DNA of 64,000 nt from Epiperipatus broadwayi (GCA_028023455.1 JAQFVV010000005.1:7998001-8062000); one strand, 5' to 3'; positions 1-54,146 are shown, counted from the first letter of the stretch. Notes: generated from the sequence alone by a model not told the origin. Translations and numbers: made by a program.

Positions 1-73
1 TTATAGCTATATGTATATGTTTCACGTATGATTGAAGTGGCATCGATCATATCGTGATTATATATATATATAT

Positions 74-1800
74 TGTAACGGAAACCCAGTGGATCGAAAG
101 GCTTAAACTTCCCTTTTATATAGATATAATGGGGAATTCTTATAATTCAAGATCGCCCACTTTCCTCTACCACAAGCAGAGAGAAAATACGGTCATAAAC
201 GAGTCTATACCCGTACTTGACCGAACTTGTATGCTATACAGGTATAGCTCAAGTTATATTTCTCGGTCAACCTTCTCCCGACTGCTGTAAGATTTAACAG
301 AGTTACAGCACTTGGATAATTATAAATTTAATGGGATCAAATACTGCACCACTAGCTTCACGTGTTAATTAAGTGCTCAAATGCATAATAATTATTTCCC
401 AACCCTAAGATTCTATTATTTTGGAAGTGGCGAAGAAAGAGACGAAATAGATTTTACATAAATAAAAGATATTTAATACAATAAATTATAATCAAAGAAA
501 CACTCAAAATTATAAACACTCAATATAAAAAACAGATTATGCTATAACACTACAAAAAATAAATAAAATACAATAGAAGATTCTATAAATGATTGCAATC
601 TGTGGAAATAACTTATCCCTTTATAGTCATTTCAAATATTCAAAGAGTCTAATTAATGTCTATCTTATTGTATGTGGGATTGGCAATTGCATTAAATTTA
701 AAGGTATGTGCACATAATTATATAAAATGTCTTATTCATAATTACCTAGGTGATAAAGTCTTCGAATAAACTTGGCATCTTGCTGACCGTCCCGTGGAAT
801 TTTTCCCACTTCTTTAGTAGGGAACGGTCGCTCTTCGGTTATATTTGATTGTTGGAACTCCTCCATATTGTGGGCATCAAGGCAAGGCAAAAACGAACTC
901 CTCGGCAGGCGCTATGTCGGCAGTTGTTACATCGAGACACGAACCATTATAGCATGGAAGTCTGGATCGACCGGCTATCATGACTGGCCCTTAGCCACAC
1001 ATCCTCAAATCTTCCCTTATGTTATAGTTTGTTTTCATGTTCCCAAAATTTAACTTTTCATGCCTGCTTTCTATTATATTTCTCTCCTTCTTATCAGAGC
1101 AGTGTCCTCACTGAAGTCTCGACCAATACTGTTTTTCAATTAATTAATTAATGATCTTTATTTTTCAAATTCTTTCCTTATCTTGATCTCTTGCAGGGTT
1201 TTTTTTATTTCACACCTTTTTACTTTAAAAATGCTTTCAACAACTTATACAAAATTTTTTATAATTTGATATAATTTTATAATATAATATTTTAAATTTA
1301 TTTCTCAATCATTTTCTTTAAATAAATTATTTCATTTTGACATGAAATAATTTGTACTCTCTTTATTCATACATTCACACATGCATTTCATTTTTGTCAA
1401 AATGTGTAATTTTAAGAACAGATCTTTATCTTTTCGTTGCATTCTAAATTTTACTTATATTTTATTTAAACTTCCCCAACTATCGCTTTTGTTTTTATAT
1501 CATTAAGTTTTTTATTTTATTTATATTTCATTTTTCATTTTTTTTAATCTTACACTAAACACATGATATCAATATTTTTTAACCTTAACATTTCTATTCT
1601 TTCTAAAATCTGAACTTTGAAGGGTAAAAGATAAGAATCATTTCGATTCTAATTTTCCCTCTTTTTTTGATTAAACATTTCTTTGTTTTGTAAATTTTTT
1701 TTAAACTCACTTTTTTTATAACCCAAGCACAATATTTAACATTCATTAAATGTCAAATATCTGTATGTGTGACCGCAGTATGTGCGATCATCACCTTACA
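74..1800 (-). repeat. 3' LTR of E1
   Basis: Matches 5521-7234. On the minus strand it starts TGTAAGG directly after the purine tract and ends CCGTTACA. Confidence 0.92.
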
Positions 1801-10301: not shown

Positions 10302-12044
10302 ATGGTCAAGGACTCAGAAAAATTGTTATATGACATAGACCTGGGACAAAATGTGTCAGAGATTAATCAAAATATGATAACCATAATGCAGAGACTAGTA
10401 CAAGGGATGGTGGAAATGAAAAAAAAATCTGAGAAACAAATGAAAAAAATAACAAAGACACAAACTGAGGAAATAGAAAAAGGAAGGGCTGAAGCCAGAT
10501 TACAATTTGATGAAATAGAAAGAAATATCAATGAAAGATTTCTGAGAATCGAAGAATAAAGTCAAAAGACAGAAGATTGGGTAAAGCAGACTTTCAAAGA
10601 AACAGTGTCAATTATATGGGATGTTAAAGATGATTGCTACCAAGTTCAATATCAGGTTTAACATTGTGAGACTATTTTAGAGGAGATTCACAAAACATTA
10701 TGAACCAGGAGGACAAATTAAGAGAACTCCAAGAATCACAATATGACATGCATAGAAAGATATACACATTAGAAGAAAATGCCAAGCATGAACAGGAGAC
10801 ATCCCAGAAGCAGATGCAAGATATCAAGATTAGCTTACAAGAGTCACAAAGGAAAATACATCTGGATTTCAGAGAGACTGTAGAAGACCACCAGGAATTT
10901 GAACTAATAAAAATAAGGCTGGAGCCCACGTAGGAACAATCTAGAATACCAGGATTTGTGACAGAGTCATGTTATTTATCAAGAATGTTGAAAAAACTAA
11001 CCCTGCTGCTGATTGATGTTAAGTGAAATACAGATAGCAGAAAAAGACTGTTCTGGCTACTGAAACTAAATGGAGTAAGGTGGGGAATGTGGTCTTAAGT
11101 GTGATAAATGGCTGTGCTGATGATGTGATTGCAGATGCAGCATGTAAATCAATAGAAATAAAGCAAGAGTTTGATGAAGATAATTCTCTAAATACACCAA
11201 CTGATGTAATTACAAATGGAGGATGCAAATCAAATAAAATTAGAGATTGATCATGTTAATACTATGCTAAATATACAAGCTGATGGGTTCAAAGATGTGC
11301 TTGCTCCCAAGCAAAAACAGATCCATGATGCAATTGGAGATAAAAGAAATGTTGCAGAGAAGTATTAGTAGACATTGCGATGTGAGTTGTGGATGTTGTA
11401 AATGAATAAGTAGATGTTACAAAGAAAAAAACTTCAACTAGATTGTAGTCAAATTTCTAAACAAAAGGAGATCATTAATGCAAGTGAAAATAAGGCAGCT
11501 TTTGCAGAGAAATCCTTAGTATGTGGAGGTGGTGAATGAGTTAGTAGATACAACAAGACAAGAAGTTCAACAAGATTTGAATCAACTGGATAAACTGGGG
11601 ATTCGAACAATAAGAATAGAGAAAGATGGATTTCAAGGGCTCCCTGAATTACCCCATGAAAATCAAGCACAGTTAAAAGAATCAGATATTTTAATTGAAG
11701 TGAAGTCACCTTTGACATTAGATCAGATCTGTGTAAATTTTAAGGATTTTCCAGAAAGCAATAAAGTCATCATCATTATGGACCACAAGTGTTCAAAACT
11801 TTTTAATAAGAGCTTATTAACAGATGACAGACTTAAAAAATGGAGCTTGACTTTACAAAAGTTTAACTATAATGTGATGTATTGCCCAGGTCTTGAGAAT
11901 GTGGTAGCTGACCTACTAAGCCATCAATCAATACAGATACAGTTCCAAAATCTGGGAATCCAAGATCAAATCCTCCAGGTAATGGCTGTTGCAGGGAAGT
12001 GCTACTTCAAATCATATATACCCTCAGATTCTGGGGAAGGATAA
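10302..12044 (+). mobile_element. Decayed Ty3/gypsy remnant: gag-like coiled-coil fragments and RNase H C-terminus
   Basis: Coiled-coil ORFs 10302-10559 and 10700-10933. ORF 11523-12044 contains IIMDHK...RLKKWSLTLQKFNYNVMYCPGLENVVADLLSH, the Ty3/gypsy RNase H end motif. Confidence 0.75.
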
Positions 12045-40619: not shown

Positions 40620-42260
40620 ATGCATTTTTAAAAACCATTCTACATAATTAATAGAATGTTAGGTTTGATCTTCAGAAAAGTCTTGAGCATTTACTTTTTC
40701 TTTTAATAGGACCTCACTTGCTCTTTGCATAAGTTTCTCAGCTCCCTGAGAATGAATAGAATATTTTAGTTGCAAACCCTCAAGAACAATCATTTCATAT
40801 TTACAAATGAAAGTTAATTAACTTTCTATACTGGTTGGTTTTAAATATAATTTTTAATAATGATTAAAGTTTGATATAATGTTAGAACCATGTTGAATGT
40901 ATAGTGTAAAGATTTACCATGGTGTCAATTTATTAATAATTTTATATTAAACTATTTTCATAATCTAATAATAAATACTGAATATTTTTAGAAAAATTCA
41001 AACTTTATTTAAACTTTTCAATTACATTCAACTATAATTACTATTCATAATGTTATAGTATATACTAATGTATAAAGTCACTAATTTAACATAATATTAC
41101 TACTAAAATGCCATTACAACCCTTTAGACAAATATAGATCTTGTGTCTAGTAAAAACCACTATTAGTGTAATTTTTTATTTTAAAATGCACATTAAATAT
41201 TATCAGTTTTAATTACCAATTTTTAGAAAACATTGTGCATAACTAAGAGGATATTAGGTTTCCTCTGAAAAGCCACAAGCATTTATTTTTTCTTTTAACA
41301 GGGTATCAATTGCTCTTTGTGTAAATTTCTCAGCTCCCTACAACTTTAAATTCATTTGAAATATTTCTAATTATAAGATCTAAATATTAACTCACTGTGA
41401 ATCAAAAATTTCATGAATGCTGATTTCTAAATGAGTTAGTGGACTTAATCAGTGAAGAATTTACTAGTTTCATGCTCTCAAATCAAAATTCTTTACATTT
41501 GCCTATGTAATTAGAAAGTAGGTTGAAGATAAGATGGCCGCTCTTATCTTTATAAAGTTATAATCTTGAGTTAAGATTTGTAGAGGTCCCTCTCATGGTA
41601 AAATTAAACACTCAAGGTGCATAGTATTATGGTTAAAGCCTTATATGTATTTAAAAAAAAAGTTAACTAACTTTCTATTCTGGTTGGTTTTAGATATAAT
41701 TTTTCATAATGTACTGTAGTTTGATGTAATTTTAAATCTATGATAAATATATAATGCTTGGATTAAGATTTGTGATGACAGTGCATTATCAGAGTGACTT
41801 CCGATTTAATAATTTTAATAATATTATATTAAACTATTTACATAATCTAATATTAAATATTGAATGTCTTTAGACAAATTTAAACTTTATTTAAACTTTT
41901 CAAATACATTCAACTGTAAGCATTAGTACTCAAAATGTTGTGGTATAAACTAACATATGATGTAACTAGTTTAACATAAAGTTATTACTAAAAGCCATTA
42001 TAACCTTTTAGACGAATATACTTTTTGTGACTAGCAAAAACCACTTTATAGAAAAAATTGAAACTGCACTTTTAAAAATGCTTATAGTGGACAATAAGAA
42101 AATTCCCCCAATTTTTTTACTAATGAATTTCCTTTTTGGTAACATTAATATGATTTTTGATGATTGTTTTAATCAAGTTTTTTGTGACTATTTGTCTACT
42201 TTTTAATTTTAAAATTCACATTAAATATTTATAGTTTTCATTGATCAAAGATTGTTTGGT
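40620..42260 (+). repeat. Degenerate tandem duplication (blocks 40620-40746 ~ 41185-41340 and 40810-41160 ~ 41660-42050)
   Basis: Shared strings such as TTGCTCTTTG...TTTCTCAGCTCCCT and AAACTTTATTTAAACTTTTCAA. Confidence 0.65.
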
Positions 42261-43346
42261 CTCTTAAAGAGTTTAGATAAAATATTCTTGAGGATATAAT
42301 TTATATTAAATGTCTAAAACACAATTTAGCAATATTGTATTTTTCCACCATAGAAATAATGTAAATTACCAATATAATTAATGAAATATAGACATTGTTA
42401 TATATATATTCCTAGTAAGTATTGTTTTTCCTCTTCAGCAATATTTTTGACTTTTTGATTTTGAAAATTGAATGCTAAAATTTTAAAATTCTTTATTTTT
42501 GCTTCCACTTTTGTATTATTTAGTAAATATTTATTTAATTGTCAAGATTCAGATGTTTTTATTTCATCAAGACTTCCTAATTTGTCAAAATTATTAATGT
42601 TACTTAAATAAATGCATTCAGTTACAGAAAAATATTATCTATCTTTTTAGAGCAATAATATATTTTTATGATTGCTTCACTCATTCTCATTAAACCTATC
42701 TAAAACATTGATTAGATTTTGAAGATTATCTTATATCATTTTTATATTAAGTTTATTTGTAAATGCAAATTTTTAGTTTTTCAGTTACAAATTTGATTCT
42801 TTGGTTTAAGTTATAAATAATTAATTTATTCTTTCCTACTATAACTTTTGAGAAAATGGTGGGTTAGAAAAAAATATTTTGGTTACTCATTTAAACATGT
42901 TGAAATAATTTAATGACTATAAGTAAAATATCTTTTCTTTGAATATTATATTGTTTAAACTTTTATATAATAAAATAATTTACAAAAGCACTTTTTTAAA
43001 AATTAATTTAATGTTTCAATATAAAGTTAGAATACAACTTTTGCAGAAAGTGTTACACTAGAATAATCACAAATAGAATTAACAAACATTGAGAGAATAG
43101 CTTTTGACAAGTTTTACAAATTTACATTTTGATTTTGAGCAATAATTTATTAACTTCTTATTTTCATCTTAATACATAAACATATATGCATATTTTAAAC
43201 ACTCACATGGCTTTAAAATACATTTTACACTAGGATTTAACATTTTTCATTGTTATCAAAGAAATTTTGGCAAAGATTCACAAGTTGAAGCTGTAAGAAA
43301 ATTATTGAACAGTTTTCTGATCATTTCTTTGTACCCCTAAGTTTTA

Positions 43347-46300
43347 TCATATCAATTTACACATTCTTTCAGTTTTTTCATCACTATATTTTAGACTGAT
43401 GTTATGGTTTTGACTATCTTCCTTATTTACTATTTTTGGTTGATCATAGAAAGACAATTTTTCAAAAAGAGGGCAAATGGATGTTTTCAATATTGGGTGA
43501 CTATAATGTAAAAAAAGTTCTACATTAGAACTATTTTTAAAATGGGCACGACAATGACGATAATCTAAATTTATTGAATCTATATTAAAATATTTTTCAA
43601 ATGCATTAACCCATATTAAACTTTCATCTAAATTCATTTTAGAAACATTTTGCAACAAATTGTGTGTTATCACAAAATAATGTTGTAACAGCCCATTGGC
43701 AAAAGAATCTTTTAACTTTTTGATGATGTATTTTTCATATCTATTCCCTATATATTGACAATCAAGTGGTGTTGTTTCAAAAATCCAAAAACAGCATGTT
43801 TTTACATAATATGACTGCACTTTTTTATTTTTATATTTGTATTTTGTATAATTATAAATTTGTCTCTGAGGGTAAGTCATGGCTCCATATAGTAATTGTT
43901 CAGCAACTGAAAAAGAAAGATAACCATTATAGGTATTATTAGATCGACAAGACTTGAGGACTACCTTGTATCCATTTGTCAGAATTTTTTGAACAGTTTC
44001 AGGTCTGGGCCAATATCTTTCTCTTAAAGCCCATTCTCTGGCCTCATCTGGCCAGCCATCAAAGCTTAAAGAAGGAACTATTTCAAGATTGTGAATCCAT
44101 GATTTCTCTTTATTAACAATATGATCTTTATAGGCCATTAATATATTTTTAAAATCTCTGCATAAGATAATATATTTATCTACTGCTGTGATATCATCAT
44201 TGATACAAGAGTCATAATGTGTATCATTCTTTCCAGAAATTTTAAAACATTTTACCTTCTGTGTATCTGTTTGGAAAGTGTCATCTTGGATGCTCCTATA
44301 TATTTTACAATTACAAACAATAGCTTCCAATTGTTTAATATTTACATTCATTTTACAGCTTAAAACATTACAAAAACGTTCTACATTATCATGGCAACTT
44401 TTTAACAGTGTAGCAAGATTTTTGTCCTTAAAAACTGTATTAAGTTGTGTCACCATTTCATATAATAGAACAAGTTTAACAATATTTTTATAACACCTTT
44501 CTGTGTCATCTCCATTATAAAAACAAGCTTTTGCTTTAAGCAAAATTTTCTTTATTCTCTTTACACTATATTTGAGATTCCGTGCTATATTCTTTACATT
44601 TTTTGACACTTTTTCATTATGATTACTAGTTTCACTTTTATTACCTGGTTTATCAAGATTAGTAGTTAACTGTAACTTTTTATTGTTACTGATATTGATT
44701 TTTCTTCTTTTTACAGTATGTTTATTATTACAAATAGATTTTTTATTTTTATGATCTGCATAGAATATAAATGCTATTAATTTCATAAAGTCATTTCTTG
44801 TTAAAAGGTTTATTAATGTCTGGAATTGATGTTTTTCATTTATTTGCTCACACAAAAATGAATTTTTATTTATATTATTTAATGTACTTTTAAATTCTTT
44901 GCTTATGAAATTTAATATTGGTTTAAAATTCAAAGCAGTGGAGTTACTCTCCAGATGTTCTGAGATTGTTTCTTCTTCTGCATTGTTTATACACATTTCC
45001 ATATAATTTGCTATAAAGCAATTCTGAAAGTAAAATTTATCATTTTGAAAATCGGTTAGAAATTTTAAATTATCAATGATTTTTGCAACTTCATTTTTAA
45101 AATTAATTATAACAGTAACATTATTATCTGTCAACTTTTTATTGCTAACACATTTTTGAATTTTTAGCATTTTATGAGTTGTAATCACAAATAAACTCAA
45201 AATTGGTTTATTATTGTTGGCAAGAATTTCTCCATCAAAAAATTTATTACTTAAAAAAGAAATATTTAAAATGCATATGTTTATTATATTAAACAAATTC
45301 TTATAAATTTCTTCTTCTTTACAATCCAGTTCTATTAAACTTAGTGTTTTAGTTTCTTGAATATTTTTTTCTTTATGCATTGTAGTTTCCTTATTTATAT
45401 TAATCTTAAATCCAATGGGAAATAAACCAAATATTATCTTATCCACTGATCTTGAAAGATTGACATTTATATTTATTTTTTGTTTTAAAAATATTTCTAT
45501 TTTTTTGCAAACAATATTTGTTATTTTTTCTGCATCATTTTTTATACATGTTATGATAATATTAATGTAATTACTAATATATTTTAAACACACTTTTGTT
45601 TTGCTAAAAATCATAAAATAATATTTATTCAACAGAGTTTGAATGCTTTTACAATTTTCTAAACAGTAATTATGTATTATATCTTTGATATATGATTTGA
45701 TGTCTTGTGGTAATGTAAGATGTTCGTCTTTTTGGTTTACATTTGTAGCATCTTGAAGCATAATTGCAACATAACATTGCTGGAAAATGTCTATTATTGT
45801 TTTAGTGATGGTATTAATAAATATTTTTTCAACATGAAATTTGATCTCATCACTATTGAATTTTGCATTCACATCTTTAATAAATAATTTAAGACTATCT
45901 TCAATATTATCATCATCATTTTCCTCTACATTCATCATTTCTTCATCATTTCCCATTCTTTTATTACTTTCTACAATTATTTTTTTTACAATCACTTTTA
46001 TACAGGTCATCATGATATCTTTTTTTTGTTTTTTAATATAACCCATAATAAGCTGTATAATTTCAGCAGAAAGTTGTTTTTGAATACTTTCTCTGTTTGT
46101 TTTCTCTTTATTTTTTTCATTCAGGTCTATTTTTTTTACATACATATCTAGAATTGAAATAGATGATTGCTGAACTTCTTTTTTTAATGAGTCAATCAGT
46201 TTTTGTTTATAAAGTTCATAAAATTTTATTTTATTTTTATCCCATACTGCTTGAATAATAACTTTTAAATCACAATTCTTATAATTTTGTATTTTATGAA

Positions 46301-47093
46301 GTATTTTATCAGCCATAATATCAAATACTAATTTAATGGATTTTATTACATCCTTTCTGCTAATGAACTTTAACATTATATTAAAAATAACTATGATTTC
46401 ATTTTTAAGTTTTTCTCTAATTTTCTCATCATATATAGTATTTAGTAAAAATTTCAATGATTTATTACACAATTCATAAAGATTGTCTTCAGCTGGATTA
46501 TTGTCACATTCTTCTAATTCATTAAAAAAAGTATCCATATCAGGTAAGGTTACAATATAATGTTCAGGCATTTCTGTAAACAATTGTTCCATTTCAACTT
46601 TACTATTAATGCTTTTCTCCAATCTCTGAAAAATATCAATCATATATTTTAAATAAGAACTATAAACATTATGAACAGAGTTATAGAATTGAATTGTATA
46701 ACAAACTTGGTTATCCATTTGTGCTTGAATGAGTAAATGAGGTGAGAAAGGGTCCAATTGTTTTCTAACTTCAGCAGTCAATACTTGACGAAGTTTTTCT
46801 AGATCTAATTCTGCCTCTTTTCCATCCTGACATCTTATAAAGCTACAATTTTTACTAAGAGCAGTCATTCTCCCTTTAATCTTGACATGAGCTGGACTGT
46901 CAGGATTACTTTGTAAAGAATCTATTTCAAAAAATGGTTTTATTTTATCATTAAGAGAATATAGTATATCTACATCAGACTTGTTTTTGCTAGTTAAAAA
47001 AGAGCCATCGGCACAACTGCCTTGGAGACAAAATCCTTTAGCATTCAGGCTTTCATGATCTACTTCACACGGATAAAATTGTATCTTTTCCAT
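43347..47093 (-). CDS. Mab-21/cGAS-like receptor (cGLR) nucleotidyltransferase with a very large internal insertion, 1248 aa, single coding exon
   Basis: N-terminal NTase motif LQGS(25-26)CADG...SD(40)VD(42)ILY and PAHVKI. C-terminal LE(1004)IVPSLSFDGWP...WP...GYKVVLK...LSFSVAEQLL...SYYVKTCCFWIFE...LLQHYFVITHNLL. The uninterrupted 3.7-kb ORF lies in AT-rich DNA, with an in-frame stop 6 nt upstream of an ACCATGG start. Confidence 0.88.
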   Translation of the reverse strand: MEKIQFYPCEVDHESLNAKGFCLQGSCADGSFLTSKNKSDVDILYSLNDKIKPFFEIDSLQSNPDSPAHVKIKGRMTALSKNCSFIRCQDGKEAELDLEKLRQVLTAEVRKQLDPFSPHLLIQAQMDNQVCYTIQFYNSVHNVYSSYLKYMIDIFQRLEKSINSKVEMEQLFTEMPEHYIVTLPDMDTFFNELEECDNNPAEDNLYELCNKSLKFLLNTIYDEKIREKLKNEIIVIFNIMLKFISRKDVIKSIKLVFDIMADKILHKIQNYKNCDLKVIIQAVWDKNKIKFYELYKQKLIDSLKKEVQQSSISILDMYVKKIDLNEKNKEKTNRESIQKQLSAEIIQLIMGYIKKQKKDIMMTCIKVIVKKIIVESNKRMGNDEEMMNVEENDDDNIEDSLKLFIKDVNAKFNSDEIKFHVEKIFINTITKTIIDIFQQCYVAIMLQDATNVNQKDEHLTLPQDIKSYIKDIIHNYCLENCKSIQTLLNKYYFMIFSKTKVCLKYISNYINIIITCIKNDAEKITNIVCKKIEIFLKQKININVNLSRSVDKIIFGLFPIGFKININKETTMHKEKNIQETKTLSLIELDCKEEEIYKNLFNIINICILNISFLSNKFFDGEILANNNKPILSLFVITTHKMLKIQKCVSNKKLTDNNVTVIINFKNEVAKIIDNLKFLTDFQNDKFYFQNCFIANYMEMCINNAEEETISEHLESNSTALNFKPILNFISKEFKSTLNNINKNSFLCEQINEKHQFQTLINLLTRNDFMKLIAFIFYADHKNKKSICNNKHTVKRRKINISNNKKLQLTTNLDKPGNKSETSNHNEKVSKNVKNIARNLKYSVKRIKKILLKAKACFYNGDDTERCYKNIVKLVLLYEMVTQLNTVFKDKNLATLLKSCHDNVERFCNVLSCKMNVNIKQLEAIVCNCKIYRSIQDDTFQTDTQKVKCFKISGKNDTHYDSCINDDITAVDKYIILCRDFKNILMAYKDHIVNKEKSWIHNLEIVPSLSFDGWPDEAREWALRERYWPRPETVQKILTNGYKVVLKSCRSNNTYNGYLSFSVAEQLLYGAMTYPQRQIYNYTKYKYKNKKVQSYYVKTCCFWIFETTPLDCQYIGNRYEKYIIKKLKDSFANGLLQHYFVITHNLLQNVSKMNLDESLIWVNAFEKYFNIDSINLDYRHCRAHFKNSSNVELFLHYSHPILKTSICPLFEKLSFYDQPKIVNKEDSQNHNISLKYSDEKTERMCKLI

Positions 47094-47272
47094 GGTTCAA
47101 AAATTCATTTTAATTAATTGCACATAAATTTTTCTAATCCAAATAGTAATCTTAAAAAAAAAAAAATATCGTTACACGTTTCAGTTTAGTTTTGCCAATT
47201 ATTAATTTAAGTTATATGATAAATTATTAATTTATTGCAAAAGTTTCTAAGTTTATGAATTAGATAAATAAC

Positions 47273-47370
47273 CACGTGATCTAATATCGATAAACAATTG
47301 CACTTACATTATTTTAAAGTTCACGTGATCTAATATCGATAAACAATTGCACTTACATTATTTTAAAGTT
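47273..47370 (+). repeat. Perfect 49-bp tandem duplication upstream of the cGLR ORF
   Basis: CACGTGATCTAATATCGATAAACAATTGCACTTACATTATTTTAAAGTT occurs twice. Confidence 0.95.
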
Positions 47371-47499
47371 TCATGTTTTAGTATTTCAAAATTATCTATG
47401 ATATACATTCAAGAGAGTTATGCAATTGTTTAAATTATTACCTTGAAATCTAATTTAAAAACGTATGATTTATGACGTTAATGTAAACGACAATTTTAA

Positions 47500-47515
47500 G
47501 AAACCGAAAGTGAAA
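47500..47515. promoter_or_regulatory. Candidate IRF-binding element/ISRE-like triple GAAA array
   Basis: GAAACCGAAAGTGAAA fits the IRF-E pattern GAAANNGAAA twice in tandem, ~410 bp upstream of the cGLR ATG. Confidence 0.4.
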
Positions 47516-50093
47516 AAAGTCCTCTAAAACTATATTTCTTATTTTTTATATCTGAAAGATGAAATACAGGTCAAATTCATTGGTTTGCTATATTTTTAGT
47601 CACAAAATATTTTATTCAATGTGCATTTGAAATTTTTAAAATGTTGATTCAAATATTTTTTTAATAGATGCATTTTTTACTTTAAAAAATAAGATTTGTT
47701 TCTCTTTATAGCATTAACTATAACTATTCAAAATTTATTAAGTTTACCATTTGGCATCATGAACCCTTTGATCCTTATTTTGAATATTATATAATATGCT
47801 AATATCCATGGATATTATTCTTACATATTCTATTTGAGCCAACAGCCAGTAAAAGTTTTAATAAACAGGAGTGATGAATTTGAAATACCGCTAGCAAAAA
47901 ACTATATTTTTAACGGCGTATAGAACGCAGAGGCGTATAAGACATATATCCTTTTTTATGCACATTTTGAAGGAAAAAAATAATTTTCTACATTTTTTCA
48001 TGAATGTCCGTAATGATTTACTATACTAATGTTATAGTTATTTATGTCAACAAAAAGTGTAACTAGGGATCACTATAATTAAGTACGTTTTAATCTTCAT
48101 CCTCAAACTGCAGAAATTCATCCCCAAAGCTAAATATTTTGAAGATTGCATCTTTTTTTACTGTATAGTATTTATTTTGTGGATAAACATATTTTAAAGA
48201 CTTTATATATATTTTAAACATTTAATTTTAAAGTATTTTTTTATATAATTATGAGAGTATTAAGTTATCTTGAATGTTTTGTTCTGATACTGATAAGATT
48301 ATGAGTACATGTTGTGTAGCTATATAGCGTAGATGAATACTTATATATATATATACACACACACTCATGTATTTATATATAAATTTTTTTTTTATTTGTG
48401 AAAGGACAAAATGCATGCATGCTTTTATAAATGTTTATTGACTTAATAAATTATATAAATGTGTATGAGTATTTGTTTCTCACATAAAACAATAAAGTAC
48501 TTATATATCTATTGAAGCAATCATTCTGTAGTCAGAGTGAGCTTCATGTTTTCTTCCTACAAACTAACCATCTACAAGGGTTCAAAACCAGCAATTATAT
48601 TTAATGTACTAACCTTGCCATTACCTACTACATGGAAACATATGTATATTTAAAATATGCTAAAATTTTACTCTATAATAAATATTTTATAATTTTGATA
48701 CTTTTGAATATCTTAAACTTGTGTGTGTGTGTTTTTTTTTTTAATTTAAAAGAGAATTTGTATAATCACATAAAGTTTGTCATTTGTAAAAATTTATTGC
48801 TTTTAATTTCGATTTTGTAAAAATTTAAAAGAAAGAAGATACAACCAAGATGGCAGGTTCAAATCAACCCATTGTGAAGTTTTCTTCACTAATTAAATAT
48901 TTTAAAAGCTTGATTTTCCTTAATCAAAAGATTGTCTTATTGTAGTTTTTACTTGAATAATTTAGAGACTTTAATTAAAGGTTTGCTAATGAAAGTGATT
49001 TGAACCTTATCTTCTTATATCTTACTTTTAATTAAATGGGACTGTAATTTGCTCAGGAATTTATTGTCTCATCTGCTTCTGGGCAAATGAGCCAAAGCAT
49101 TGCTGTAATAGTTTGGATGGTATAAATAGAATAGATTGGAGATAAGGTACAGCGTTATGGTCTTACAGTCATACAGTCTTACATTATTGGCTTTTACTCT
49201 AACTTTGCTTTTAGTTTTTAGAATGTCTTGAGTAGGTAGCCGTCTTTCCCTGGGCCTCTCGGAGCTGCCTCTGGTATGCTGCCATGAAACTCCTGCCATG
49301 GAAGAAGACTACCACTGATGAAAAAGCAGTAGTGACCGAGATTTCTGACTACCAAGCTGATCCTTGTAACTGAAGTTCAGAGAATGAACCATTTAACCAT
49401 TCACCCCAAAGTATGCCGAGGTAACAATCCAATAGCTATTTAAAGTTGTCTATGCTTGCCTATAAATATTAATTGTTTTCTTTTATAATCTCTACCTGTA
49501 AAAACTTTTCTATAATCCTATCAAATATATTGTAAGGATCGCCACAGGTCTCATCCTTATCCTTACAATAACATGCATTGAACACAGAACATAAACATAA
49601 AAAAATTAAATATTTATGAAGGTAATAAAGCATGTCTGTAGATATACACATGTATGTGTTAATTTATAAAGTAATACATCCATCGAACAGTTCAAGTTTA
49701 TTAGATATAAAGGTTTGAATAAAATTGTATTCGTATTTTACAAACTGAAAATTCTTGAAACAAAAATAATAATGGTAAAAGGAATTAATAAAAATTTGTT
49801 ACTAATTTTCATTTTATTAATATTCTAAAATAACCCTACCTGACTAAACGATGTTGTTTAAACAATTGAGAAGGTTTTATATATATAAAAAAAGCAATTA
49901 TAGAATCTAGTGTTGTGAAACGAAGGGGGAAAGAAAACCTGGTAGAATGTGTTTGACAACAACCATGACAACAACAACAATTTTTTTTTTGATGGCTGGA
50001 AAAATTAAAAACAAGTACAGAAAAAAATATAAGAAAGTTTTTTTCTTCTTTATTCTTTAACGATGACAGATCAAATAATTTGAAAATTATATA

Positions 50094-53163: not shown

Positions 53164-53405
53164 CATGAAAGTAGGAGAATGGCAGGTTAATAAAGATAAA
53201 TTAATTGATTATTTGTTCCATTTTTTGCGTGAGTTTAATTATATTACCTCGCAAATATTGCTTTAAAAAAATAAAGAACTAGACAGGGGAGAAAATAGGA
53301 GTGAGAGGTAGAGGTTCAACAGTAAGGCAGGTAACGGTCAGCATAGTATTTTGTAAGCTGGGGTGAGGAGCCCGGCACGTTATATATATATAGAGAAAAA
53401 AATTT

Positions 53406-54146
53406 ATGTATCTCACAGATAAAGCAGGGGAAATCGATATGTTGAATATTATTATGAGAAAGTTACAGGAGATGGAAGAAAGAATGGAATTAAAATTTGA
53501 CGAAATGAGGGAAATGTATAAAAAGCACGAGATTAAAATATTAGCATTAGAAAAGAAATTAGACAAGCAGGTAGGGAAAGGCGAAAGGGAAGAAAGCCCA
53601 ACCCAAAGAGAAGTCGACCTAGAAGAAGGGAAAATGAAAGTCGAGATAGAAAAGAAAGAGGAAGTAAGAAAAAAGAAAGACCAAGTAGAAGAAAATAGTA
53701 TAGTAGAAGACCAGGATGATTCTGTTACATGCTCGGTATCACAGTCGCAGGTAAACCAGTTCCTGGCAATTAGAGTGTTCACAGGGCAAATGGGCGATGC
53801 GCCAATGAAAAATTTAAAAGGCTTAGAAAGATATGTTGATTTTGACGAATGGGGAAGTAAGCAGGGACAAAAGATGCATGAAAGATATTTTACCATTAAT
53901 GTATGTGGGAGTAAGCACGAACAAAGGATATATGTATGGAAAAAGAAAAAGAAGAGAAATTGCGAAGCACCAAGTGAAAACTTAGAAGGCATAGAAAGAT
54001 ATTTTAACTTTGATGTAGGGGGGAGTAAGTGTGGACAAAAGATGTACGAAAGGTATTTTACCAGTAACATAGATGGAAGTAAGCGTGGACAAAAGATATA
54101 CGTATGGAAAAAGAAAAAGAAGGGAAATCGTGGGAATTTTTTATAG
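53406..54146 (+). CDS. Gag-derived 246-aa ORF: coiled coil, start of capsid, then a 56-aa tandem duplication with lysine runs
   Basis: QFLAIRVFTGQMGDAPMKNLKGLERY aligns with QFLKIQVFTGDPGESPMEHLESLEWY of E1 gag. A 168-nt repeat starts at 53799 and again at 53967. Confidence 0.7.
   Translation: MYLTDKAGEIDMLNIIMRKLQEMEERMELKFDEMREMYKKHEIKILALEKKLDKQVGKGEREESPTQREVDLEEGKMKVEIEKKEEVRKKKDQVEENSIVEDQDDSVTCSVSQSQVNQFLAIRVFTGQMGDAPMKNLKGLERYVDFDEWGSKQGQKMHERYFTINVCGSKHEQRIYVWKKKKKRNCEAPSENLEGIERYFNFDVGGSKCGQKMYERYFTSNIDGSKRGQKIYVWKKKKKGNRGNFL

Follow-up and report, generated by a model that had tools for sequence, protein, structure and literature searches.

The window analysed here is a 64-kb stretch of the Epiperipatus broadwayi genome (GCA_028023455.1, JAQFVV010000005.1:7998001-8062000), and all positions given below are window positions. 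On its minus strand lies one long open reading frame (ORF) whose product contains the elements of a Mab-21/cGAS-like receptor (cGLR), with the two halves of the nucleotidyltransferase (NTase) core separated by a very large middle region. We consider it likely that the gene is intact and without introns, and that it codes for a strongly diverged protein of the Mab-21/cGAS-like receptor family with its core in two pieces. The first piece, residues ~20-84 and perhaps reaching ~113, has the GS loop and the DxD strand; the second, residues ~1000-1170, has the third-acid strand, the remaining NTase core and the helical C-lobe. The features of the gene are listed below (aa, amino acids; pLDDT, predicted local distance difference test of the structure model).

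43347..47093, minus strand: split Mab-21/cGLR-like gene, a single ORF of 1248 codons plus stop with an ATG start (from the ORF listing).
46842..47036, minus strand: N-terminal half of the NTase core, aa 20-84, with strand 1 carrying GS, strand 2 carrying DxD and then a hairpin with PAHVKIK (family N-lobe profile; pLDDT 80-93).
47016..47021, minus strand: GS motif, G25-S26 (in 79 relatives the two columns are 100% G and 96% S).
46968..46976, minus strand: first two catalytic acids, D40-V-D42 (columns 83% D, the rest mostly E, and 99% D).
46872..46892, minus strand: PAHVKIK strand, aa 68-74, just after DxD, with P67 conserved (family consensus 'PgfvrIk'; strand at aa 69-76 in the model).
44109..46751, minus strand: insert, about aa 115-995, with an uncertain N-terminal edge (aa 85-140); K/I/N-rich and Pro/Gly-poor, predicted to form long amphipathic helices (pLDDT 22-78).
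44061..44090, minus strand: third-acid strand, aa 1002-1011, with the E1004 codon at 44082-44084 (paired with DIVP of MB21D2 and with the D column of the family; strand in the model, pLDDT at least 89).
43890..44093, minus strand: C-terminal half of the Mab-21 NTase domain, aa 1001-1068, including W1014-P1015 and YLSFS, which is RLSFS in the family (PF03281 and 415 database relatives).
43623..43844, minus strand: Mab-21 C-terminal helical lobe, aa 1084-1157 (PF20266; pLDDT 86-98).
43350..43583, minus strand: C-terminal tail, aa 1171-1248, without a recognised domain (no Pfam family match; low pLDDT to aa 1200).

The ORF of 1248 aa is the only one of at least 100 aa within 42000-48500. The local G+C (GC) content is 23-25%, and the remaining five frames of the same 3.7 kb contain 66-198 stops, with a longest open run of 91 codons. 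At a per-codon stop probability of 0.097, calculated from the local base composition, the probability that 1248 codons stay open is about 7e-56, and that of the 860-codon middle is about 1e-38. The frame has therefore been maintained. The start codon is in the context ACCATGG, and an in-frame stop is found two codons upstream of it, therefore the frame cannot be extended 5' within the exon. No other copy or fragment of the ORF was found by tblastn in the 64-kb window, and an exact-protein lookup returned no identical protein on record. About 180-280 bp upstream of the ATG, in the presumed promoter or 5' flank, there is a perfect 49-bp tandem duplication (47273-47370; 2.0 copies, 100% match).

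The superfamily assignment is given by two Pfam families, both above their curated thresholds. Mab-21 (PF03281) matches aa 1001-1068 with 26.7-34.2 bits and Mab-21_C (PF20266) matches aa 1084-1157 with 28.3-33.1 bits, against a cut-off of 24.1. The NTase profile is matched only at positions 122-194 of 197. Among PDB sequences, human MB21D2 (7lt1, E 2.6e-7) and the cGLR1 protein Sp-cGLR1 (8gjy, E 1.6e-5) score best, both restricted to aa ~1003-1164, and in this search LEIVP of the ORF pairs with DIVP of MB21D2. An exhaustive phmmer search with aa 1-1200 against 1.84 billion representatives gave 415 matches at E <=1e-3; among the 150 matches listed, the best stretch always falls within aa 943-1198, with 27-41% identity. 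Among the named members of the clusters that were looked up are anthozoans (Porites, Actinostola, Montipora, Pocillopora, Oculina, Exaiptasia) and a few deuterostomes. Word-indexed homology searches with the whole protein and with its C-terminal 258 aa gave no matches, the former probably being swamped by K/I/N-rich words. The first-pass annotation of this DNA, which was made from the sequence alone, had placed the LE1004IVP strand and the whole Mab-21 C-terminal lobe after residue ~995, and this placement was borne out: LEIVP falls in the third-acid column and the Pfam matches lie at aa 1001-1157.

For the N-terminal half, Pfam gave no match on aa 1-135. A phmmer search of aa 1-135 against 150 relatives found weak collinear matches, from aa ~20-85 to target residues ~40-125, exactly in those relatives whose C-part begins unusually late, and profile iteration inside the relative set converged on 89 proteins, canonical-length ones included. 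A family N-lobe profile was then built from 82 relatives with the ORF left out, and ORF residues 21-90 score 32.7 bits against it (E 4e-12, for one sequence), compared with 9.7 bits for the best of ~1,900 composition-matched shuffles. Because this ORF-free profile aligns GS, DVD and PAHVKIK to GS, DvD and PgfvrIk of the family, they are real homologous elements, and the N-strand signature of the superfamily (a GS loop plus [DE]x[DE], homologous to the family) is present in the ORF. G25-S26, D40 and D42, which the first-pass annotation had picked out in the N-terminal region, sit in conserved family columns (100%, 96%, 83% and 99%). The PAHVKI strand proposed at the same time does exist at aa 68-74 and is homologous to that of the family; it directly follows DxD, and as a partner of the third-acid strand it did not hold up. 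Ahead of strand 1 the ORF has 19 residues, compared with ~40-60 including a helix in the relatives.

In order to examine the split core as a structure, we used an AlphaFold model built with an 83-sequence family alignment (mean pLDDT 56; predicted template modelling score, pTM, 0.52), the single-sequence prediction of the ORF having a pLDDT of 32. In the alignment-based model, pLDDT is 80-93 for aa 20-80, 87-98 for most of aa 1000-1170 and 22-78 between them. VIA-align superposed it on human, mouse and pig cGAS and on Cv-cGLR1 with Z of 19-20.5 (20.5 to cGAS) and a root-mean-square deviation of 3.1-4.3 A, over 255-285 residues within model positions 18..1170. Because the C-terminal half alone provides only ~170 residues, the N-terminal half is packed in its canonical position in this model. 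A shape search of the ESM Atlas agrees with this: 249 of the 287 residues in a compact Mab-21 cluster were aligned to the model between its residues 25 and 1174. Foldseek, a local method that is unable to bridge the insert, recovered ~175-210 columns, which is the C-terminal half only, and MID49 and MAB21L1 are among the structural matches of the model. The bilobed cGAS-like fold is thus found, in a predicted model only, and it is well supported, not proven, that the two halves would assemble into one ordinary cGAS-like bilobed fold. The structure prediction proposed in the first-pass annotation therefore agrees, at model level, with its central claim of an NTase core split by a very large in-frame insertion whose halves form one fold.

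The insert has a size of ~860-900 residues and is composed of 13.6% K, 12.8% I and 11.0% N, with ~1 Pro and ~1 Gly per 100 residues. Its GC content is 22.8% versus 29-34% in the core parts, and its GC at second codon positions is 19.5% versus 30-33%. At 100 degrees its hydrophobic moment averages 0.88, compared with 0.72 +/- 0.044 for shuffled sequences (~3.6 standard deviations), and the model contains many long helices of low confidence in this region, for example at aa 334-379, 415-449 and 463-539. The earlier description of the middle as open, Lys/Ile/Asn-rich and apparently alpha-helical is in line with its composition, its scarcity of Pro and Gly and its helical moment. No transmembrane segment was found in the insert, and the stretch at aa ~785-825 is K/N/S-rich, predicted as coil and probably disordered, with KRRK at 795.

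The N-terminal edge of the insert can be bounded only to aa ~85-140, because the family alignment is unreliable past aa 76 of the ORF and an extended N-half profile, in which the following helix and the SPAVTL strand are included, aligns only aa 20-83. YTIQFYNS at aa 132-139 resembles YGFTFYNS of P0116, a relative described below, which hints at an equivalent of the SPAVTL strand at this position.

Homologues of the insert were searched in several ways. It has no Pfam match at E up to 1 and no PDB sequence match, and none of the 150 phmmer matches listed has its best stretch there. Self-BLAST of the protein revealed no internal repeats, and Tandem Repeats Finder gave no notable repeat in the DNA. 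When the insert alone was used in a protein-language-model atlas search, only weak Mab-21 clusters were returned (score 0.85, 106 shared features), and we judged them to be contextual or due to chance. These results bear on the idea that the middle is neither foreign nor newly formed and represents a degenerate tandem duplication of Mab-21, with the N-lobe of the first copy, decayed lobes and the C-terminal half of the last copy. Mab-21 C-lobes are all-helical, as is the insert, and the atlas search does list Mab-21 clusters, at a score within the chance range and possibly reflecting the protein context. However, Pfam is blank across the whole 860-aa middle even at this permissive threshold, the family N-lobe profile scores only 0.4 bits at aa 925-965, no internal repeat was detected, and the best stretches of the matches listed all avoid the middle. 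Such a duplication is very improbable.

The split was further compared with the family. We measured the spacing from DxD to the third acid in 83 relatives that have both elements, P0132 being set aside for its reversed order, with the following distribution.

86-165 aa (canonical): 36 relatives.
177-280 aa: 21 relatives.
306-465 aa: 24 relatives.
718 aa: 1 relative (P0116).
962 aa: the ORF.

A contiguous core has a spacing of ~90-165 aa, and the 962 aa of the ORF is a variant feature in this respect. The uniqueness first attributed to the split is weakened by this continuum, since an enlarged gap of 177-718 aa is present at the same place in clustered relatives, of which all the named ones are anthozoan. 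Pfam on ten of the long-spacing proteins again recognised only positions ~96-193 of the NTase profile. Their inserts are homologous to each other (BLAST E 1e-9 to 1e-86) and start after the conserved SPAVTLNF strand, whereas the ORF insert has no similarity to them by BLAST and scores -6 bits with a profile of the anthozoan insert domain. The ~300-aa domain that follows the SPAVTL strand in these relatives is accordingly not found in the ORF at that score.

This domain of ~300 aa is an observation in its own right. It is conserved and lies inside the NTase core of many database proteins (e.g. P0070:175-465 and P0033:154-435), of which the named ones are anthozoan. It has no Pfam match, a profile of it found nothing significant among PDB sequences, and it seems to be undescribed.

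In a maximum-likelihood tree of the core only, a clade of 41 proteins (support 98/88) holds every long-spacing protein except the ORF. All of its members are uncharacterised database entries ('uncharacterized' or 'hypothetical'), and the named ones are all anthozoan. The terminal branch leading to the ORF measures 2.3 changes per site, the median being 0.41, and the free tree does not resolve where the ORF belongs. When the ORF was constrained to group with the long-spacing clade, the tree was not rejected (approximately unbiased test, p-AU 0.59; log-likelihood 1.95 better than the free tree), and a single origin of the enlarged loop, later refilled or expanded, is possible. From the above, the enlarged loop appears to be shared with a clade whose named members are anthozoan and to be undescribed so far, with the ORF as its most extreme case and an insert without detectable homologue; the gene may represent the extreme end of a lineage-wide tendency to enlarge the same NTase loop.

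A limited full-text search, which is not proof of absence, found no published description of a split Mab-21 core. The 2023 survey of ~3,000 cGLRs describes expansions in cnidarians and bivalves, and a term search of its text met no mention of core insertions (10.1101/2023.02.22.529553). The first-pass annotation would have been undermined by many described cGLRs with the same insert; the long-spacing relatives turned out to be uncharacterised entries with unrelated inserts.

As to the active site, 37 columns are at least 80% conserved among 82 relatives, and the ORF keeps 32 of these 37. The conserved residues retained include G25, S26, D40, D42, P67, W1014-P1015, R1024, W1028, S1060-F-S1062, E1065, K1098, F1140 and N1145. 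At the position of the third acid the ORF has E1004, whereas 99% of relatives have Asp there and one other (P0091) has Glu, and Y1058 replaces the Arg of RLSFS, which is Arg in 94% of relatives. In cGAS structures the equivalent Arg contacts a substrate base, and the change could alter specificity or impair activity. In the 2023 survey, an active cGLR is defined by a complete acidic triad plus GS (10.1101/2023.02.22.529553). Measured against this definition, GS, D40 and D42 are present in the ORF, with Glu1004 at the third position and Tyr1058 in place of the RLSFS Arg.

These substitutions are among the reasons to consider that the protein is a non-catalytic Mab-21 scaffold, in which synthesis has been lost and the huge helical insert is the main functional surface, making protein or nucleic-acid contacts only. 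MAB21L1/2 and MID49/51 have lost nucleotide-synthesising activity, and MID49 and MAB21L1 are among the structural matches; E1004 against 99% Asp, Y1058 against 94% Arg, the missing N-terminal spine helix and the very long branch of the core all fit this account. On the other hand, GS and DxD are fully kept, Glu can still bind metal and is also the third acid of P0091, and the 32 retained columns include SFS, E1065 and K1098. In Mab-21 proteins without catalysis it is usually the acidic triad itself that has been lost, which also speaks against the loss of catalysis here. We regard this scaffold as a serious contender, a little short of an even chance. With Glu and Tyr at these two positions, no spine helix, a long branch and a weak constraint on the insert (see below), a non-catalytic or altered function is about as likely as conventional cGLR activity; as judged from the residues, the choice between an active NTase, perhaps of altered specificity, and a non-catalytic Mab-21 scaffold would be roughly balanced.

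Transcription was assessed in a sequencing run that is guessed to be RNA (X1; 97 Mb of contigs). One loose contig end carries what we take to be an Illumina small-RNA-type adapter, fitting an RNA library. X1 contains 41% of the sampled words of the gene and 36% of the words of 46540-47150, the N-half region. Its contigs lie on 43044-43817 (across the stop codon and ~300 nt of 3' flank), 44331-44478, 44753-45067 and 45267-45954, and there is nothing on the flanks at 42400-42990 or 47325-47915. No joint that skips the insert was found among the X1 contigs. Of the N-half words, 5-19% also occur in runs assigned by label to three other organisms, which suggests that close orthologues exist.

A 592-nt X1 contig is 94% identical to the ORF within the insert and has a 3-nt indel; a 15-nt indel is present in another contig, and both indels are in frame. 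The contigs at 45267-45861 and 43508-43817, 94% identical to the insert and to the C-terminal half and with these in-frame indels, suggest that an allele or a close paralogue of the gene is expressed. The 34 differences in the 592-nt contig result in 32 codon changes, of which 22 are nonsynonymous, 10 are synonymous and none is a stop; many of the replacements are of the I/V/L type. When the same substitutions were placed at random, the expected synonymous fraction was 0.23 +/- 0.07 versus 0.31 observed (P 0.13), and 1.5 stops were expected (probability of 0 stops, 0.19). The openness of the insert is maintained, and its constraint at the level of residues is weak as far as this one comparison tells. 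The suggestion that the unbroken frame is under selection is therefore only partly sustained: the frame is open far beyond chance (~7e-56), and the residue constraint in the insert is only weak.

The middle might also be absent from the mature protein, either as a long open intron or as a region spliced out, so that the product would be a Mab-21 protein of normal length. The insert GC of 22.8% is near the non-coding background, no RNA contig links the three parts, no depth covers 46537-47127 and the amino-acid constraint on the insert is weak, all of which favours this reading. However, 860 open codons at P ~1e-38 with other frames full of stops, amphipathic helical periodicity beyond that of shuffles, and indels in multiples of three in the related contigs speak against it. 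The X1 contigs inside the insert, without a skipping joint, and the enlarged loops of relatives, which also lie in single unbroken ORFs, are further points in favour of translation, and removal of the middle has a very small chance of being correct. The assumption that the insert is not spliced out is thus consistent with the fragmentary X1 contigs, none of which shows a joint removing it.

The same data speak to whether the gene is a decaying or recently pseudogenised copy from an expanded immune gene family, functionless and open only by its youth. The long branch, the two active-site departures and the near-neutral ratio of nonsynonymous to synonymous changes in the insert would suit such a copy. 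Against it, neither a stop nor a frameshift occurs in 3.7 kb of DNA with 24% GC, a composition at which stops often arise by random substitution, and none of the 1.5 stops expected from 34 random changes is seen. The start codon lies in a good context, transcription is apparent and most of the conserved core residues are kept. We consider a pseudogene improbable, though less so than either the duplicated or the spliced-out middle.

Several points weigh against an intact gene with a split and folded core. X1 is fragmentary and only guessed to be RNA, with no single contig that links the N-terminal half, the insert and the C-terminal half, and there is no X1 depth over 46537-47127. The nonsynonymous to synonymous ratio of 22/10 in the insert, taken from one 94%-identical contig, is not significantly different from neutral. 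In the core, E1004 and Y1058 stand where 99% and 94% of relatives, respectively, share another residue, the usual long spine helix ahead of the GS strand is missing, with a stop just upstream, and the very long branch (2.3) would also fit a relaxed constraint. Beyond PAHVKIK the sequence could not be aligned, which leaves the exact insertion point uncertain, and the evidence that the two halves assemble comes from one predicted model with a pTM of 0.52.

If the gene is intact with its core in two pieces, as we prefer, the insert would exit the core just upstream of the third catalytic acid, and its long amphipathic helices would be dispensable for the core fold. It could then be an accessory helical arm grafted beside the active-site cleft, whose sequence would evolve quickly but must remain translatable, most likely serving the Mab-21 core in regulation or in scaffolding/oligomerisation. 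The insert might act as the sensor or autoinhibitory arm of an active enzyme, as had been imagined at first. A more specific version, in which the cGLR is still active, the insert is a new module for sensing or gating that is particular to this lineage, synthesis is controlled by ligand binding or oligomerisation through it, and the loop of the clade is an unrecognised hot spot where cGLRs gain receptor domains within the core instead of at the termini, is in our view rather unlikely, although less so than a pseudogene.

cGLRs are regarded as a large family of animal pattern-recognition receptors, most of whose ligands are unknown, and their diversification is usually put down to surface remodelling or terminal domain fusion. 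The proteins described here form a natural set in which a single site of the Mab-21 catalytic core accommodates insertions that range from 100 to ~900 residues, filled by a conserved ~300-aa domain, a tandem-repeat array or a giant helical region. With this set it becomes testable how far the Mab-21 NTase fold can be interrupted and still assemble, and whether core insertions regulate or sense. If the protein is catalytically dead, it would be a further example of an NTase fold reused as a scaffold.

The surroundings of the gene contain no informative neighbouring ORFs in the 64-kb window. No gene for a cognate receptor, STING or other, was found in this window, the only part of the genome covered, and an Rfam scan of positions 1-64000 at gathering thresholds gave no match. 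At 53279-54146 there are overlapping ORFs on opposite strands (263 aa on the minus and 246 aa on the plus strand; GC 34%) with only a sub-threshold Pfam match to DUF678. A 173-aa ORF at 11523-12044 has a sub-threshold match to a reverse transcriptase RNase H-like domain and is probably a retroelement remnant.

Among known systems, Sp-cGLR1 (8gjy), Cv-cGLR1 (8gjw), human and mouse cGAS and human MB21D2 (7lt1) consist, like the ORF product, of a Mab-21 NTase core and a helical C-lobe. They also share with it the GS loop, a strand bearing DxD and, on the strand that corresponds, an acidic third residue, and the model superposes on them with Z ~20 over 255-285 residues. However, their catalytic elements are contiguous (92 aa from DxD to the third acid in human cGAS), whereas those of the ORF are 962 aa apart. 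The ORF also differs in having Glu instead of Asp as the third acid, Tyr for the RLSFS Arg and no long N-terminal spine helix.

Some long Mab-21 proteins with terminal extensions, namely Ptychodera flava XP_070561325.1, Antedon XP_071954309.1 and Saccoglossus XP_077868706.1 (1091-1213 aa), resemble the ORF in carrying the Mab-21 C-part at the far C-terminus. In P0140 and P0147 (1091 and 1153 aa), unlike the ORF, the weak matches to the N-lobe are found ~150-190 residues upstream of the C-part, which suggests that the domain is contiguous and extended at its N-terminus, with no split in the core; with the family profile, P0019 and P0087 gave no N-lobe match.

Close counterparts in architecture are the proteins of the enlarged-loop clade, for example Porites lutea XP_073227771.1, Actinostola KAK3755580.1, Oculina patagonica XP_078342257.1 and Exaiptasia XP_020914075.1. 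They have the same type of N-lobe ('GS..DvDi...PgfvrIk') with a break in the same general place, Pfam sees only their second NTase half, and their genes appear to be single ORFs, as in the case studied here. Their gap is 177-465 aa, the longer ones with the ~300-aa domain after SPAVTL, while the ORF insert is two to three times longer and dissimilar, and the ORF core is far more divergent (branch 2.3 versus a median of 0.41).

The second-longest spacing, 718 aa, belongs to P0116 (ENA assembly ERZ25072740, L001 9702-13085), which is encoded by one unbroken 3.4-kb ORF, again like the gene described here. A reverse-transcriptase ORF is located 3.6 kb downstream of the P0116 gene on the ENA contig. 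The N-half motifs of P0116 and the ORF are similar (AFCLGS/GFCLQGS, NPAFVKIK/SPAHVKIK and YGFTFYNS/YTIQFYNS, respectively). Unlike the ORF insert, that of P0116, which occupies the same site of the NTase core, consists mostly of ~45 tandem copies of an 11-aa Ser/Val/Ala/Asp-rich unit (SSHTVDNSLAA-like) and is probably disordered; P0116 also keeps Asp as the third acid, and the GC content of its gene is 39% versus 24% in the ORF.

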